A stretch of 64,000 nucleotides of DNA, from contig RHPI01000560.1 in assembly GCA_009103225.1 (NCBI GenBank), positions 293,465 through 357,464 on the forward strand, read 5' to 3'. The first letter of the stretch is position 1. Every line of letters begins with the position of its first letter. Shown here piece after piece: positions 14,625 to 61,400 of the stretch. Source of the DNA: Chlorokybus atmophyticus (taxonomy: Eukaryota; Plantae; Mesostigma and Chlorokybus algae). Made by a program: the position numbers and the translations under genes. The notes below the pieces were generated by a model that ran no database searches, was not told the DNA's origin, and saw only the letters and a list, made by a program, of their open reading frames with translations.

Positions 14625-15362
14625 GTAGCTCAGCACGTGCCTCACTGGCCACACAATCACAAGGAGCACTGCGAGGCGGCAGCTACGGCGATGATGCCTA
14701 CGACAGCGGCGGTGTCGGCGCTGACGACGTTTGCCACTGCTGCACTGAGAAGGCTTGGAAGACTCACCGCATCCGGTAGGGAAACATAACGGCGCGCCGC
14801 ATGCAGCATGGAACCTTGTGACTCTCCATATAATCACACATTGGGACCGCGTTGAAAGCATACAAGGTTGAAATCTGTGTTTATACACCAATCATCATGC
14901 CATAGGCTTGGTAAATTCATAACACACAAGAGTTGCGGTAAAGGAAGCTCTAAGAGTGGTTACAATCATCATACCATAACATCTGTCAAAACGTCATGTG
15001 GAACTTTGGCATTGTGTTACCAATTGCTTGTAATGCTACGTCAATTGCCTTACTCCTACTAAAACAGTGGACAAGCATTTGAAGTTGGACACATGGTTGT
15101 GATGACAATGTGCTTGTCGGAGTCTTAAAGCAAAAAATTAACGCAAGTGTGATGGAAATGATTTTGCGCAGGGTTTTTCAATATGAACAAACATATCAAA
15201 CAGTAACTGCCTTGCGCATATCCTGTACAACACCACTGATTATGATCCATGCATGCTTATGCGCAACCCTGAAGATAACCGCAACGAGGATGACCTTCAT
15301 GATTAGGCAGTGCACAATCTTTACAGCTATGGTCACATACCAGAAAGATTGTTATGTAGACG

Positions 15363-18036
15363 CTAGTCATACAGCAAGTACCGGTTTCGCATCGCACTGA
15401 ACCAGGTGACATCTTCTTGCCAGCTTGCTATGACGGCGCTTTCTTCCATGCCAGAATCGATGGCTTTCCTGACAGAGTCGGAGCCCGTGAGCTTGTCTAC
15501 CCAGAAGCCAGCTCCTGTGTCGTACCGCCATGCAAACTTCTTTGGCCATAGCAGTCGTATGCAGCTAATCACCGCGATCGCTGTTCTCAGCGGGTCAAAC
15601 AGCCTCTCATCGGTGATGAATACCTGTTTACGAATCCACATATTAGCTCTCAACGTCAAACATGAAGCTGAGCTGTGTGACACTGCTAGCTAATACTCAA
15701 TTCATCTGTCAAACCAGCAGTAGGTGGTTATCGCGGTGAGGCTACTTGCAAGGAAGCGATTAGTCACAATGTGCCCACATGCTGTAGTAAGTTACCTGCA
15801 CACCGCCGACAGTCTGCTTCTCGTACTTGCTGAAGGTTGGTTGGAAGTAAGCCTCCCTGAACGCTGCGCCTGGGACACCTTTTGCTCGCAAGGCGGCCGC
15901 CAAACTGCCATCGATCCACGGTGCACCTACCTGCGTGCAAAAAGATATACTCCTGTATGAGCCGCAGCAACAACCACCTGTTGCAATGAGTCTAGCCTGT
16001 TTAATCACCAGCTCGAAAGGCAAGGTGGTCCCTCGCCCTTCTGATACATTTGTTCCCTGCAAGTGGCAAGGAGAAGTTGCAGCCATGACCTGCATTGCAT
16101 GTTGGTCCAAGCGTACTCAGTGTCTTGTAAATACCTCAAACAGCCCCATGCCGGCATACACCAGCGCAGTGGTGGCGGTAGGTACATTTGGTGAAGGCGG
16201 CACCCACAGTAAGCCCAGTTGTGACCAGCGCATGCTGCGCCGCCAGCCTTTGCATTTGACTACTCGCAGATCTGCCTGATACACATGGCACGCTATTACT
16301 TGGTAAGGTAGCCAGGACATGCATGCAACCAACCAACACACCTTTGAGCCATTAGCATCGCCAGGTACGTACTCTGCGTTAAACAGCTGCGCCAATTCTC
16401 CTATGGTCATCCCATGCCGCAAAGCAATTGACTGCACAGGTCAAGGTGAGCATACAACACCCAGCAATGTAAGCATGCGTCAATGTAGGCACGAACCTTG
16501 CGCCCAACAAAAGTCGCACATGAGGGTGTCATCAAAGGCCCATCAACTATGTTGCCTCCAATCGGGTTTGGGCGATCCAGTACAACCACTGGGAGCTGAC
16601 ATAATGCAGCTGCAACCAGGCAGTCATAAAGCGTCCATATGTATGTGTAAAACCGCACCTGCGAAGTGCCAAATGTTTCAGCAACCTTGACAGCAAGTCT
16701 GCACGAGCACGAGACAATGTCAGGTTTTCAAAGAACACACACCAAAGTACAAACACTACCTAACACTCAACACCAGTACCCCAATGTCTTGCAGGTCGAA
16801 CACCAACGTGTCAATGCCAGCTTTTTGGAATATCGCTTTCAGGCCAGTCCCTTGCTGCATTTGGAACATACATGCGCTGAAACAGCGCAACCACCATGAA
16901 GATGATTCCACTACGAGCAAGTTGGGAAGCAAACAGCGTACCAACACACTGCCGAGCAGGCATGACTACCTTCATGTAGATATCGTACACAGGTAGTCCG
17001 GTTGCTGTGTCCACAGTAAAGCCTTCAGACTTGCCAGCCTACACATATTAACCGCAGCTAAGTGCTCGCTGTGCATCTCTCTTGGCCATCCATGTGTCAA
17101 CAAGCAGCCACATGATGCAAGCAAACACTGCACAAGATCGCTGCAAGCTAGCCTGACATATCCGAGCTCTGCAACCATACTGCCTACCTGAGATGTCCCG
17201 CGAAACCCGTGCTCAGGTCCAAATACAGCAACAACATTGACCTGGTCCGACGCGTGCGCAACATCCACCTGGCACATGCATTGACTTCACTTGCATGATC
17301 GGCTAAGCAACGACAGCCCGGTAGCCAACAAGCGAACTCACCTCATGGCGCATATCACTGAAGACACCGGTATGGTTGGTCAGCACGCCAACCTGTAACA
17401 CTACAGTTGTTAGCGTCACACACAATGCACCATGCAGTCTTAGTGGACAGTTGCTAGCAGTCGGTAACAAGTGGAACTGCAAAACATGCAACTGGACATG
17501 GCAAAAGCCTGTGCACGCTTATGCATGTCGCACGTGTGTGCCCGATGCCCATATGCTGCAGTAAACTTTGCAATGTCACACTGCAGGACTATGCCGAGCA
17601 TACCCTTATGTTACAAGATTGGCCTGCATGCTTGCTGGTCGTGCATGCATAGTCTCCAGACTGCTGTGTTGGAAACACACCATGCAGAGCATCCCATCAA
17701 CACACAATGCAGTTGTTTCTTTCACACTTGCACTTGATCTACGACAAACTCGATCACCTTACGCCCTTGAAGAATGCTGTAACCCTCTGCAGCCAGCATC
17801 TCCAGTCCGGTCACGACTCTGGCGGTAGCGGTAGCATCCATCAAGTTGGTTCGCCGCAGCAACGGACCGAGCCGTTCAACCACGCTGGCTCCTGCTGCAA
17901 CAGGCGGCTCCGACGACGACAATGGCTCGACGCCGATAGCATCGTCTAAAGACTCAGTCCTCGCAGCAGGCGGCGGCAAAAACACGCTCACCGCCGCCGC
18001 CAACCCCACCGCCCCAGCCAGCCATGCCGCCCACAT
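15363..18036 (-). CDS. namZ: Bacterial-type exo-beta-N-acetylmuramidase NamZ (DUF1343/YbbC, GH171) with spliceosomal introns
   Basis: Spliced motifs in family order: RVVTGLEML..GRKVGVLTNHTG, VAVFGPEHGFRGT, TGLPVYDIY, LVFDLQDIG|VRFYTYIWTL, VVVLDRPNPIGG, RHGMTIGELAQLFN, WVPPSPNVPT..ALVYAGMGLFE|GTNVSEGRGTTLPFEL, FREAYFQPTFSKY, WVDKLTGS, RNRYLLYD*. The N-terminus is hydrophobic (MWAAWLAGAVGLAAAVSVFL). Confidence 0.92.
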
Positions 18037-18269
18037 GCTTACTTGCAATGCTGCAACGCAGCTACCGTGAGCTGAAAATAACCAAACAACACAGCGCTAA
18101 CCAAGAACGATATCCATACTTCTTTCGGTCACGCAGGAACCGGTAACGCGTTTACTTCATGTATCGAGTTGGTTCCAGTTAGTGGGACTGAGGAACGTTA
18201 ACCACGAGGTCAGCTGCGAGGTTGTTGCCGGTAGAGCCGTGGTGGGCGGCGTAGGTGGCGTCGGCGGGG

Positions 18270-20003
18270 ATGGTCGCCTTGAGCAGGTGGCTTGCGTCCT
18301 GCGCGTTTCTGTCACTGCTATTGTTGGCCGCATGCTCCACGGGCGCTTGGGCCCAGAAGGCGAGCAAGCAACGGCAAGGGGACACCCGGCAAAAGGTATA
18401 ACGTGCTGGCTGTTGTTGGCTCCTCTTTTCGTCTCTGAGACGATTGCGGGTTAGATGTACAAACTAGTTGCATGCCAGACTTCGTACTCAGGAAGCCGAA
18501 TGAGTGTGCTGTCAGGCTTTAACCAGCTTATACAACACAATGTGTGCTCATCCAGAAGCATGCTTGCCTTCAAAAAGGGGTCAGGCAACAATGCGATGGC
18601 AAATGCACAGACATCCTGCCTACAGGAGCTTTATAATGCTGGAGCGTGCTCTCAAACTACGCTGTCTTGGTGCTGTTGTGTTAGGATTCCAGTCGTCGCT
18701 GGTTTGTGTCACACAGACTGTGCGCCATGGCACGCTTTCTCCGGTTTGCTCATCACTGTCTGTGCATTGCGAAAACAGCAAGCGCCCGATTGAGGGTTGT
18801 TGACGTTTGTGGCACGCATGTTCTTATTAATGCGTAACATTGCATGCCTGCAGTGGTGCCAGCTCGTGGCTTGCCACAATCTTGCAACGTATTGTTTTAG
18901 ACACAGTGACGATGGTGCTGACACATGGTCAAGTCGTTGACAATGCTTGGTTAAGTCATGCTGCTCACAATGCGGGCTGTATGGCAGGAGCTCGCAGGGC
19001 TGGTAGCTTCTGCATGGGATGGGATTATCTCCTTGGATGGCAGCCTGTTTGACAAATACGCACAGGGGAGTGAACCCAGGCCATACACGCTGGTGTTGTT
19101 CCTGGACGCTGAGTCTCTTCATAATCGCCTGCCTCTGCAGAAGTATGAGCAAAATCTATGCACATGCAAGCGCTATGGTTGTGTGTGAACAGTATTAAAC
19201 GTGTTGTGTGCAGGTTGAAGACTGAGTTTGCCCTGGCTGCAGCAGCGTACAAGAAAGAGCATGGCGCTACACCTGAAGGCAGAAGGGTTGTTTTTGCTAC
19301 AATGGAGTTTTCACGTTCGCAGGCGGCTTTTGGACTGTTGGGTGTCAAGACACTGCCTCATGTTTGCGTGATCCCGCCTTCAGCAAGCAGGGGAGGGGAT
19401 GGCGTCCTGGCGTTGCCTCCTGAGTACACGGCACCGCCACCAAACGACCTCAACTCCTATGCCGAGACCATTGCGCAGTTTGTTGAGGCAAGTACAGGGC
19501 TGAAGTTGACTTCGCCCATCGTGAGGCCACGGCTGTTTGATCAGACTTGGTTCCGGATCACCTTCTTGCTTGGCATTGTCGGTTTCCTCAGTCTAGCGTA
19601 CAAAATCATTAGTTCTGGTGCGCTCCAAAGACCTCAGTTGTGGGTGTTGGGAGCACTGGCAGTGTACTACTTCTCTGTCTCAGGGGGCATGTATGGCATC
19701 ATCCGTGGTGTCCCGCTTGTTGGCGTTGACCAACAGACCGGCCAGCCAACCTTTTTCTCTAGCCCAGGGCAGGGGCAGCTTGGAGCTGAGGGGTTCATCA
19801 TTGGCTTCCTCCATTTGTCAGTTGGGCTTCTTGTCGCCTTCCTCACACATGTTGCTCCCTCCATTGAAAATCCTCGCAAGCAGCGCTCTGTCACTTACAT
19901 CCTGCTGGCGGCGGCCGCATTGCTCTTCCTCAAGGATGTCAACCTCTACACATGGAAGACTGGCTATGGGTTGCGAGTGTTCTGGCCTAAGTTTTTGTCA
20001 TGA
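18270..20003 (+). CDS. OST3: Oligosaccharyltransferase subunit OST3/OST6 family
   Basis: Signal peptide MVALSRWLASCAFLSLLLLAACSTGAWA and a thioredoxin-like lumenal part (GIISLDGSLFDKY..PRPYTLVLFLDA; LKTEFALAA..VVFATMEFSRSQAAFGLLGVKTLPH). The TM region carries YYFSVSGGMYGIIRGVP..GQLGAEGFIIG and ends YTWKTGY. Confidence 0.92.
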
Positions 20004-25418: not shown

Positions 25419-25777
25419 AATATATATATATATATATATNNNNNNNNNNNNNNNNNNNNNNNNNNNNNNNNNNNNNNNNNNNNNNNNNNNNNNNNNNNNN
25501 NNNNNNNNNNNNNNNNNNNNNNNNNNNNNNNNNNNNNNNNNNNNNNNNNNNNNNNNNNNNNNNNNNNNNNNNNNNNNNNNNNNNNNNNNNNNNNNNNNNN
25601 NNNNNNNNNNNNNNNNNNNNNNNNNNNNNNNNNNNNNNNNNNNNNNNNNNNNNNNNNNNNNNNNNNNNNNNNNNNNNNNNNNNNNNNNNNNNNNNNNNNN
25701 NNNNNNNNNNNNNNNNNNNNNNNNNNNNNNNNNNNNNNNNNNNNNNNNNNNNNNNNNNATATATATATATATATATA
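25419..25777. repeat. (TA)n microsatellite flanking an assembly gap of Ns
   Basis: TATATA runs on both sides of the N block (about 25440-25758). Confidence 0.95.
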
Positions 25778-33743: not shown

Positions 33744-35672
<1,929 letters not shown>

Positions 35673-60547: not shown

Positions 60548-61400
60548 CACCTCCTCCTGTTCCTCCTCCGACGAGTCTTCTGTTTCAACGCCGGAGTCAT
60601 CTTCATCCGCTGCTTCGCTCGCTGACAGTACAGCGGCTACTTCGTCCTTCAGCTTGAATGTCAGCGCCTCGCCGTGCACGCGCATGCGCTTGATGGTCGC
60701 TTTGAGAGTGACCACCTGCATTTGGTAATGCTGTAAGAGTGGCGTGCTGCCAGAGGACTAGCCCATCAGCATACACACGCTTACCTCGTCTTCCGCTTTG
60801 TTGCACTCCGCCAGGCAGACAGTCAGCCTGCCGCGCTGCTCTTGGTTCACTCTGACCNGAACTGCTTAATTACCGCTGGAAACATTCAACTAGGTTATGG
60901 ATTACCCGTTCGTGGTACTCCGCAGCTTCTCTTTTGCGACTTGTGAGCTCCCGCAAATAGAAATAGGCTGTGCATTTGCGAGATTGGTCATGCTGTTTAT
61001 GTGCATGACACTGGAGGTTGTGCATGAGGGTGTGCATGTGGTATTGACAGTGTATGTCAAGTGCAAGATACTTGAGGCTGTGCATGTGCAAGATAAAAGA
61101 ACCCTAGCATGTGGCATTGACAGTGCATCGTAACCCACCTTGGTTATGCCAGTCTTGTTTGGTCCCTTCAATCATGTCGCCGAAGTCGCAGCTGCTGGTG
61201 GGTCGGATTTTCTTAGAGGCAGTATTGTGGTGTGCCTTTGCCCACTCGGAGGGGGAGCCCTGTAAGATATCGCCCGAATCACTGTTGTCATTGGATGTGC
61301 CCTTGGTAGTCTTGGTGGGGTTTGACACCGAGGACACCCCTCCGGCACCCTGCCCGCCCTGTGCAAACATGGAATTCATCCCGGACCTCGACCACAATGC
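60548..61400 (-). CDS. Hypothetical spliced gene or pseudogene with coiled-coil and acidic tail inside the TE block
   Basis: VRVNQEQRGRLTVCLAECNKAEDE|gtaag..atgcag|VVTLKATIKRMRVHGEALTFKLKDEVAAV..EDDSGVETEDSSEEEQEEVV*. Upstream pieces are LRELTSRKREAAEYHERVIHNLVECFQ and a Gly/Ser-rich segment. There is a single N at 60858. Confidence 0.45.

Follow-up and report, generated by a model that had tools for sequence, protein, structure and literature searches.

A gene for a bacterial cell-wall enzyme in the nuclear genome of a green alga provokes two questions: how did such a gene come to be there, and what does it do? The gene in question lies at positions 18036–15363, on the minus strand, of a 64,000-nucleotide (nt) stretch of DNA from Chlorokybus atmophyticus (assembly GCA_009103225.1, contig RHPI01000560.1, positions 293,465 to 357,464), which we call the window and to which all coordinates below refer. 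We show that it is a real, transcribed, and correctly spliced nuclear gene for a full-length protein of the GH171/NamZ family. The explanation that we favor as a whole, and consider on balance probable, combines an old bacterial origin of the gene, a NamZ-like chemistry of its product, and a role in the turnover of the plastid wall.

A spliced and expressed gene for a NamZ-family protein

The gene was modeled by joining stop-free pieces in the three minus-strand frames under GT-AG and reading-frame rules; at each gap, the junction was chosen that best fit the NamZ family consensus. The resulting model has 11 exons and 10 introns, with a coding sequence (CDS) of 1392 nt (463 codons) that runs from an ATG at 18036 to a stop codon whose final base is at 15363 (Table 1). 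The spliced protein is identical at 463 of 463 residues to the EukProt entry jgi/Chlat1/1649/Chrsp127S01895, and the public annotation of C. atmophyticus holds the same model, upstream ATG included. Because all ten introns are in phase 0, the length of every exon is a multiple of three. At the exon borders, all ten upstream exons end in G (eight of them in AG), and seven of the ten downstream exons begin with G. An earlier interpretation made from the letters of the DNA, hereafter the sequence-only reading, had correctly described the gene as intron-bearing but had put the number of spliceosomal introns at about nine; both the GT-AG model and the transcripts give ten.

Transcript data carry this conclusion. 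In a search of sequencing runs, runs of one organism, from two studies, held 33–38% of the sampled words, which is approximately the exon share of the stretch. Transcript contigs (contigs, not raw reads) were then compared with the window over positions 14900–18500. A 1337-nt contig from one run (X1) and three shorter contigs from another (X2) skip exactly the ten introns of the model. At 10 of 10 junctions, the skipped segment has CT..AC ends on the plus strand, equivalent to GT..AG on the gene strand, and no further differences were seen. As spliced forms arise only from RNA, these contigs prove both expression of the gene and the correctness of the model. Transcription, whose absence had been named beforehand as a reason to abandon the sequence-only reading, is thus documented by spliced contigs from two studies.

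The contigs cover only positions 15381–17975; the ATG at 18036, the stop codon at 15363–15365, and the 3′ untranslated region are uncovered. Contigs of both runs break at 15380/15381, with 15–18 nt left before the stop is reached. At the other end, the X1 contig extends to 17975, after which Illumina adapter sequence follows. Such breaks may come from an assembly branch, a filter, or real ends. We considered the end at 17975 as a proven transcription start and rejected it, because both runs also stop at 15380/15381, within the last codons; contig ends that fall short of the stop codon are not transcript ends.

The full protein matched both Pfam domains of the family over practically their entire profiles: NamZ_N (PF07075) with 253 bits (profile positions 1–202 of 203; cut-off, 26.9 bits) and NamZ_C (PF20732) with 178.5 bits (positions 1–152 of 152; cut-off, 25 bits). 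Single exons also matched in colinear order, at profile positions 19–44, 77–90, 91–143, 146–165, and 170–202 of NamZ_N and 27–72 and 75–152 of NamZ_C. The sequence-only reading had reported a full and intact set of family motifs; all six are present (GPEHG at residue 127, DLQDIGVRFYT at 180, DRPNP at 213, HGMT at 245, PSPN at 296, and SEGRGT at 321), as are the three further stretches that it had quoted. We regarded as near-invariant those alignment columns with at least 93% conservation among 32 labeled prokaryotic NamZ sequences (six phyla plus haloarchaea). The Chlorokybus protein matches the consensus at 46 of 46 such columns, among them E129 (of GPEHG) and R324 (of EGRGT), whose columns are 100% conserved in the 32 sequences. 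In Bacillus subtilis NamZ, Glu92, at the tip of β-strand 2, is the proposed catalytic residue, and Arg279 of the C-terminal domain is located in the cleft (PMC8054146). Matched through the motifs rather than by direct alignment, E129 and R324 appear to be the counterparts of Glu92 and Arg279, respectively. Hence, the proposed catalytic Glu and Arg, the loss of which would have spoken against the sequence-only reading, have been kept.

The predicted structure agrees with this assignment. An AlphaFold model based on a 60-sequence alignment had a mean predicted local distance difference test (pLDDT) score of 89 and a predicted template modeling (pTM) score of 0.84; residues 70–463 were modeled confidently and residues 1–66 were not, with pLDDT values below 50 at residues 1–51 and 61–66. 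A single-sequence model (pLDDT 32.6) was discarded in favor of the alignment-based one. The sole significant PDB matches that Foldseek returned for the predicted model were two DUF1343 proteins of Bacteroides fragilis: 4K05 (E 6e-37, TM 0.91, root-mean-square deviation 2.1 Å) and 4JJA (TM 0.86), both TM values being by target. The model accordingly shows the two-domain fold of BF0371/BF0379, with a Rossmann-like α/β/α N-terminal domain and an α/β C-terminal domain. A feature search of the ESM-Atlas returned generic bacterial NamZ clusters only.

The genes surrounding NamZ in the window are eukaryotic: an M24 methionine aminopeptidase, OST3/OST6, Cwc15, pyruvate kinase, and a proteasomal AAA ATPase. 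The sequence-only reading had judged contamination unlikely on the grounds that the gene sits between conserved eukaryotic genes, and the flanking genes and the splicing agree with it. Taken together, the splicing, the flanking genes, and the full conservation of residues rule out that the gene is a contaminant or a pseudogene.

Table 1. Exons and introns of the Chlorokybus NamZ gene, and an open reading frame (ORF) inside its first exon (window coordinates).
Feature	Position	Strand	Size	Content	Basis
Exon 1	17758..18036	−	codons 1–93	ATG; hydrophobic leader, residues 1–19; acidic low-confidence linker; conserved domain from about residue 70	
Intron 1	17757-17393	−	365 nt		
Exon 2	17342..17392	−	17 codons	VGVLTNHTG	model and transcript junctions
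Intron 2	17341-17269	−	73 nt		
Exon 3	17188..17268	−	27 codons	GPEHG; Glu129 codon at 17212-17214	
Intron 3	17187-17039	−	149 nt		
Exon 4	16970..17038	−	23 codons		model and transcript junctions
Intron 4	16969-16855	−	115 nt		
Exon 5	16780..16854	−	25 codons	ends with FDLQDIG	model, Pfam, transcript
Intron 5	16779-16659	−	121 nt		
Exon 6	16497..16658	−	54 codons	RFYTYIW...DRPNP	67 bits on its own against Pfam
Intron 6	16496-16432	−	65 nt		
Exon 7	16342..16431	−	30 codons	RHGMTIGEL	model, Pfam, transcript
Intron 7	16341-16276	−	66 nt		
Exon 8	16135..16275	−	47 codons	PPSPN; NamZ_N ends here	
Intron 8	16134-16057	−	78 nt		
Exon 9	16009..16056	−	16 codons	NVSEGRGT; Arg324 codon at 16033-16035	
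Intron 9	16008-15931	−	78 nt		
Exon 10	15796..15930	−	45 codons	NamZ_C	model, Pfam, transcript
Intron 10	15795-15624	−	172 nt		
Exon 11	15363..15623	−	86 codons + stop	end of NamZ_C, ...RYLLYD*	
Introns, whole span	15624..17757	−	ten introns	GT-AG, all phase 0	
Out-of-frame ORF	17841..17942	−	33 codons	inside exon 1; TGA overlaps the Met66 ATG (TGATG)	

Orthologues and shared introns

Three database searches, each reporting the best 120 of at most 8000 word-sharing candidates, were used to find relatives. Full-length comparison and a cluster look-up identified orthologues in the streptophyte algae Chara braunii, Mesotaenium endlicherianum, Klebsormidium nitens, and Mesostigma viride. Among land plants, the lycophyte Diphasiastrum complanatum, Ceratodon purpureus, and Marchantia paleacea carry one, and among chlorophytes, Picocystis salinarum, Chloropicon primus, and Cymbomonas tetramitiformis do. 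In all, eleven named green genera hold NamZ, and two unnamed transcriptome sequences can be added. The group thus spans prasinophyte-grade chlorophytes, all sampled streptophyte algal classes, bryophytes, and a lycophyte. Besides the green sequences, the remaining top matches were Actinomycetota. When exon 11 was compared with 1.84 billion representatives, the best matches had about 50% identity.

Intron positions were read by exact mapping of the annotated proteins of seven orthologues onto the corresponding genomic loci. The genes of Marchantia, Ceratodon, and Diphasiastrum have ten introns each, all in phase 0, and in the alignment these fall between the same codons as the ten introns of Chlorokybus. 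Klebsormidium has introns at eight of the ten Chlorokybus positions. Cymbomonas has three in common with Chlorokybus (after GRK|VG, GTSQ|AG, and VGRK|SI) and eight of its own, and the genes of Chara, Chloropicon, and Picocystis are intron-less. Under a harsh null model, in which introns were allowed only at the 26 AG|G sites of the CDS, the chance of one species sharing the same ten introns is p about 2e-7; three species do.

The ten phase-0 introns were therefore in place in the streptophyte common ancestor, and three of them were probably in place in the ancestor of green plants. Because all ten are common to bryophytes and a lycophyte, the gene predates the streptophyte radiation; the introns that overlap with those of Cymbomonas, together with the chlorophyte orthologues, indicate that it probably goes back to the green-plant ancestor. 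The shared introns rule out contamination and recent transfer alike.

The fate of this structure differs between lineages. The all-phase-0 arrangement has been frozen from Chlorokybus to the lycophyte, and every intron has been lost in Chara, Chloropicon, and Picocystis.

Phylogeny and the origin of the gene

A maximum-likelihood tree was computed from 66 rows and 407 columns under LG+C20+F+G4 with posterior mean site frequencies (PMSF); support is given below as ultrafast bootstrap/Shimodaira–Hasegawa-like approximate likelihood ratio test (SH-aLRT). Labeled outgroups were taken from plasmid records, and the haloarchaeal proteins were located by their annotated CDS coordinates. The green and actinomycetotal sequences formed one clade (92/90), in which the Actinomycetota were monophyletic (98/90) and the bryophytes and lycophyte grouped together (100/99). 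Outside this clade were Brevibacillus, Paenibacillus, Subdoligranulum, haloarchaea, Deinococcus, Burkholderia, and Bacteroidota. Because other prokaryotic phyla surround this clade, the direction of transfer was from prokaryote to eukaryote.

The Chlorokybus protein is 52–58% identical to NamZ of Actinomycetota (55–58% to that of Streptomyces) and 53% identical to that of Chara. Among species genomes in GTDB, the best 80 of 600 motif-bearing loci belonged to Streptomyces, Nocardioidaceae, Nonomuraea, Actinoallomurus, Jatrophihabitantaceae, and one metagenome-assembled genome (MAG) labeled “Bacillota”. By these comparisons, the nearest sampled prokaryotic relatives of green NamZ are the Actinomycetota, as a sister or adjacent clade. 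The resemblance to actinobacterial rather than cyanobacterial homologues that the sequence-only reading had noted was therefore borne out by both searches and tree.

Its proposal of horizontal transfer from soil bacteria into Chlorokybus was not. A recent, lineage-specific transfer should leave the gene in one lineage, with few or lineage-specific introns; instead, we found it in eleven genera, with 10 of 10 introns shared with bryophytes and a lycophyte and three with a chlorophyte. Likewise, the phylogeny that had been suggested as a check did place Actinomycetota as the nearest prokaryotes, but it also placed the protein within a broad green-lineage clade; this corresponds in part to an outcome that the sequence-only reading had named as refuting it, namely nesting in an already described broad eukaryotic clade. 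Two results do favor a fairly recent acquisition by Chlorokybus from soil Actinobacteria. The identity to Streptomyces NamZ is slightly above that to Chara, and forcing Chlorokybus into the Actinomycetota cost 28.7 log-likelihood units and was not rejected by the approximately unbiased (AU) test (p = 0.065). On the other side stand the introns, identical in position and phase in Marchantia, Ceratodon, and Diphasiastrum and, for eight of them, in Klebsormidium; a pairing of Chlorokybus with Mesostigma in quick trees (SH-aLRT 94–95), which the careful tree left unresolved; and a streptophyte branching order that followed the species tree in the first quick tree. The intron map refutes recent transfer unless the orthologues’ gene models are wrong, and the Chlorokybus junctions are confirmed by transcripts. 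We thus consider a recent transfer extremely unlikely. The protein alignment by itself does not exclude a separate transfer; it is the intron evidence, not the tree, that settles the matter.

Could the gene instead have arrived with the cyanobacterial ancestor of the plastid? Such an origin would suit the age of the gene, and the presumed substrate is itself a cyanobacterial relic. However, no cyanobacterial sequence was present in the best 120 of the three database searches, in the best 80 of the 600 GTDB loci, or in 32 plasmid records; the nearest labeled relatives are Actinomycetota; and cyanobacteria are not among the NamZ holders in the paper that founded the family (PMC8054146). Endosymbiotic transfer therefore strikes us as very unlikely. 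As far as the sampling shows, green NamZ goes back to one very early acquisition, and its donor was a bacterium other than the cyanobacterial endosymbiont; inheritance since then has been vertical. A non-cyanobacterial origin is in line with the enzymes of plant peptidoglycan synthesis, most of which are reported to be non-cyanobacterial (PMC6946739).

The N-terminus and the start codon

The annotated Chlorokybus protein starts with MWAAWLAGAVGLAAAVSVFL. Its residues 1–19 have a mean Kyte–Doolittle value of 1.79, and an acidic, proline-rich linker follows this leader to approximately residue 66. The sequence-only reading had likened the N-terminus to a signal peptide or anchor rather than a classic transit peptide, and a hydrophobic segment followed by an acidic stretch is what we see. 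Hydrophobic N-termini were also found in Chloropicon, Picocystis, related marine sequences, and one streptophyte transcript (KD15 was 2.28 for Chlorokybus and 2.34 for Chloropicon), and the actinobacterial relatives have Tat/Sec-type signals. The proteins of Klebsormidium, Marchantia, Ceratodon, Diphasiastrum, Chara, and Cymbomonas start 15–25 residues before the domain and have no hydrophobic segment.

Over codons 1–65, the codon-usage score was 0.014 for the annotated frame versus −0.49 and −0.19, which weakly favors the annotated frame. We consider it fairly likely that the annotated start, the ATG at 18036, is correct. The out-of-frame ORF inside exon 1 would act as an upstream ORF only if transcription began near 17975, with translation then starting from Met66. 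The overlap of its stop codon with the Met66 codon resembles an arrangement for termination and reinitiation.

A conserved “MG” start is found in Klebsormidium, Marchantia, Ceratodon, and Diphasiastrum. If this start is read as a site for N-myristoylation, the consensus finds a favorable residue at position 6 in Diphasiastrum only.

A candidate enzyme of plastid-wall turnover

Given the conserved sequence and fold, green NamZ would be expected to work like the bacterial enzyme, that is, as an exo-β-N-acetylmuramidase. It would release MurNAc from the non-reducing end, or a GlcNAc-MurNAc disaccharide, from peptidoglycan glycans free of peptides. Presumably, it would act after an amidase has stripped the stem peptides, in alternation with an N-acetylglucosaminidase of the NagZ type.

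What would supply such glycans in a green alga? The in vivo substrate could well be material from the alga’s own plastid peptidoglycan layer, with a role in its turnover or recycling; we hold this view tentatively, giving it close to an even chance. A peptidoglycan-synthesis toolkit has been reported in streptophyte algae, bryophytes, lycophytes, Chloropicon primus, and Picocystis salinarum (10.1101/2023.05.02.539068; PMC4815162). We rank the plastid-wall role first because every named green holder of NamZ belongs to a lineage reported to have the full toolkit. Stated most boldly, NamZ would be the exo-lytic arm of plastid-wall turnover or recycling, derived from an Actinomycetota-like gene in the green-plant ancestor, kept with its ten introns from Chlorokybus to the lycophytes, and lost wherever the wall was lost. 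This full version is possible, and we regard it as speculative. If true, NamZ would be a marker gene for peptidoglycan-bearing plastids and a first handle on how plants dismantle their wall.

Several points weigh against a plastid-wall role and the history proposed with it. Topology is the weak point: the wall lies between the envelope membranes, and no orthologue has a plastid presequence. By inspection, the Chlorokybus N-terminus is signal- or anchor-like and not transit-peptide-like, and a plastid targeting sequence was seen neither there nor in the land-plant, Klebsormidium, or Chara orthologues; NamZ of Klebsormidium, Chara, the bryophytes, and the lycophyte looks cytosolic. The start itself is a further point, as the transcript contigs end at 17975 and Met66 is a possible initiation site. 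As for the chemistry, release of a monosaccharide versus a disaccharide is not predictable from GH171 sequences (bioRxiv 10.1101/2021.12.02.470905). As for the history, green monophyly in the best tree had moderate support (74/76), the AU test left Chlorokybus free to group with Actinomycetota, and the tree holds no glaucophyte, red-algal, or cyanobacterial GH171 sequences, none of the last having been retrieved. Finally, the match between NamZ and the toolkit depends in part on absences. No angiosperm was among the listed matches (the best 120 of at most 8000 candidates in each of three databases), and such lists, from non-exhaustive searches, only suggest that angiosperms, core chlorophytes, red algae, and glaucophytes lack NamZ. 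The topological difficulty would be eased if soluble wall fragments reached the cytosol, as they do in Gram-negative recycling, in which NagZ is cytoplasmic.

The principal competing explanation is an enzyme of the secretory route, located at the cell surface, in the medium, or in a vacuole, that trims peptidoglycan fragments from bacteria and thereby scavenges amino sugars or alters immunogenic fragments. A role of this kind has been proposed for the NamZ genes that ciliates acquired horizontally. The hydrophobic N-termini of Chlorokybus, Chloropicon, Picocystis, and the related marine sequences point in this direction, as do the Tat/Sec signals of the actinobacterial relatives and the export of the B. 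subtilis and Tannerella forsythia enzymes (PMC8054146; 10.1101/2021.12.02.470905). Moreover, NamZ has been tied to digestion in other eukaryotes, namely Paramecium bursaria (10.1101/2024.09.14.613017) and anaerobic ciliates (PMC13198582), and one green holder, Cymbomonas, is reported to eat bacteria (PMC5167767). Nevertheless, the Klebsormidium, Chara, bryophyte, and lycophyte orthologues are devoid of any signal, and the Chlorokybus leader falls outside the transcript coverage. A general antibacterial role also predicts neither an exon structure unchanged from Chlorokybus to a lycophyte nor the apparent restriction to lineages with plastid peptidoglycan. We accordingly view a secretory role as somewhat unlikely.

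A different possibility is that the fold and residues were conserved while the enzyme was re-purposed for a substrate other than peptidoglycan, for example, another acidic N-acetylhexosamine glycoside. The substrate mode of GH171 enzymes varies in ways that their sequences do not predict, the cytosolic-looking land-plant forms have no obvious access to the wall polymer, and no NCBIfam model claims the Chlorokybus protein. Re-purposing is hard to reconcile with the retention of all 46 near-invariant prokaryotic positions and with a phyletic pattern that tracks peptidoglycan-bearing lineages, and we deem it improbable.

Additional observations on the window and on family members

NamZ (minus strand) and the upstream exon of OST3/OST6 (plus strand; its transcript contig starts at 18240) are arranged head to head. 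As only about 200 nt separate the NamZ ATG from the first transcribed base of the neighbor, the region between them (18036–18240) is probably a shared, bidirectional promoter. Elsewhere in the window, an assembly gap of 319 N at 25440–25758 has (TA)n on both sides, and single Ns occur at 34235, at an (AC)n/(GA)n junction, and at 60858.

Some of the collected sequences call for comment. The Mesotaenium model ME000191S02470 (P0001) lacks the PSPN...SEGRGT segment and has an odd insertion ahead of RHGMT; it is probably mis-spliced. Mesostigma Mv09722 (P0354) reads ASEHG in place of GPEHG and contains an internal “MGRLC” that, in the alignment, lies close to where other streptophyte proteins start with “MG”. 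A NamZ labeled as haptophyte (P0381; EukProt EP00963, Diacronema/Pavlova lutheri) is almost identical to the Picocystis protein, with the same unusual leader and KKRK-type linker and with end branches of about 0.1 each; it probably reflects green-algal contamination or mislabeling in the haptophyte data set. Four sequences from contigs of about 1.3–4 kb (P0051, P0021, P0031, and P0094) have signal peptides of a eukaryotic style; their branches lie either inside the green and actinobacterial clade or at its base, and they may be further eukaryotic holders.

Among prokaryotes, NamZ of the MAG labeled Bacillota (L028, JBLNCQ010000060.1) groups with unnamed metagenomic sequences (95/86) well within the actinobacterial clade, a placement due either to mis-binning or to transfer. 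Two metagenomic proteins of about 900 residues (P0297 and P0298, from JGI/NCBI; a cluster member is labeled Planctomycetaceae) comprise two tandem NamZ units, with two DRPNP and two GRGT motifs, and they topped the profile search solely because the tandem units doubled their score. On megaplasmids of the haloarchaea Haladaptatus and Halorussus (L091 and L092), NamZ, about 42% identical to that of the alga, lies directly upstream of nagZ. Since these hosts have no peptidoglycan, this arrangement suggests that they use bacterial wall sugars as food.

Significance

The NamZ family, its fold, and its chemistry are already known, and transfer of NamZ into eukaryotes has been described for ciliates. 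Plant and algal NamZ proteins are labeled “DUF1343 domain-containing” or “hypothetical” in public databases. A full-text literature search, which reached few subscription journals, found no paper on plant or algal NamZ or on a green NamZ clade, and NamZ is unmentioned in the reviews and surveys of plastid peptidoglycan that it found. Green NamZ thus appears to be an undescribed group within a known family; what is out of the ordinary is where the enzyme occurs and how it came to be there, rather than the enzyme itself.

How plastid peptidoglycan is made has been investigated by genetics and biochemistry in mosses and followed in surveys of green plants; far less attention has gone to how it is broken down. 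An exo-muramidase conserved in lineages that keep the wall is a concrete candidate for that breakdown, and it is testable because Marchantia and mosses can be genetically manipulated. With it, the reported mosaic of non-cyanobacterial peptidoglycan genes in plants (PMC6946739) gains a degradative member. Since its ten phase-0 introns keep their places from the earliest-branching streptophytes up to a vascular plant, the gene illustrates with unusual clarity how a sequence of bacterial origin turned fully eukaryotic at a very early date. Should the target prove to be bacterial wall fragments, the gene would bear on how early green algae handled bacteria.

Comparison with known systems

B. subtilis NamZ (YbbC), the founding member of GH171 (PMC8054146), has the same two Pfam domains and the same Glu (in GPEHG) and Arg (in EGRGT) as the Chlorokybus protein. 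By analogy, export is plausible for the algal protein too, and its action would be expected to follow that of an amidase and to accompany that of NagZ. Unlike its B. subtilis counterpart, the algal gene is nuclear, is interrupted by 10 spliceosomal introns, belongs to no operon, and encodes an N-terminal extension of about 65 residues whose reality is uncertain. The closest prokaryotic sequences, those of Actinomycetota (Streptomyces, Nocardioidaceae, Nonomuraea, and Micromonosporaceae), are 52–58% identical over the whole domain; they differ in being bacterial and intron-less and in having Tat/Sec signals. Our literature search found no biochemically characterized NamZ from this phylum. The B. 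fragilis DUF1343 proteins (4K05 and 4JJA) have the same fold and 30–34% identity, but they are periplasmic proteins of a gut bacterium and distant in sequence. NamZ1 and NamZ2 of T. forsythia (bioRxiv 10.1101/2021.12.02.470905) belong to the same family and need peptide-free MurNAc; they also demonstrate that the family is split into enzymes that release monosaccharides and enzymes that release disaccharides.

Two eukaryotic systems invite comparison. The NAMZ genes of ciliates (P. bursaria, 10.1101/2024.09.14.613017; anaerobic ciliates, PMC13198582) are likewise derived from prokaryotes and reside in a eukaryotic nucleus. In contrast to green NamZ, they represent independent, lineage-restricted acquisitions tied to the digestion of prey or symbionts; the green gene is far older and vertically inherited, and its hosts make their own peptidoglycan. 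PPASP, a LysM protein present only in those streptophytes with the peptidoglycan pathway (PMC4815162), is, like NamZ, a plastid-wall candidate by virtue of its phyletic co-distribution rather than the origin of its sequence. The two proteins are unrelated, however: PPASP has a transmembrane helix and a LysM domain and no enzymatic domain.

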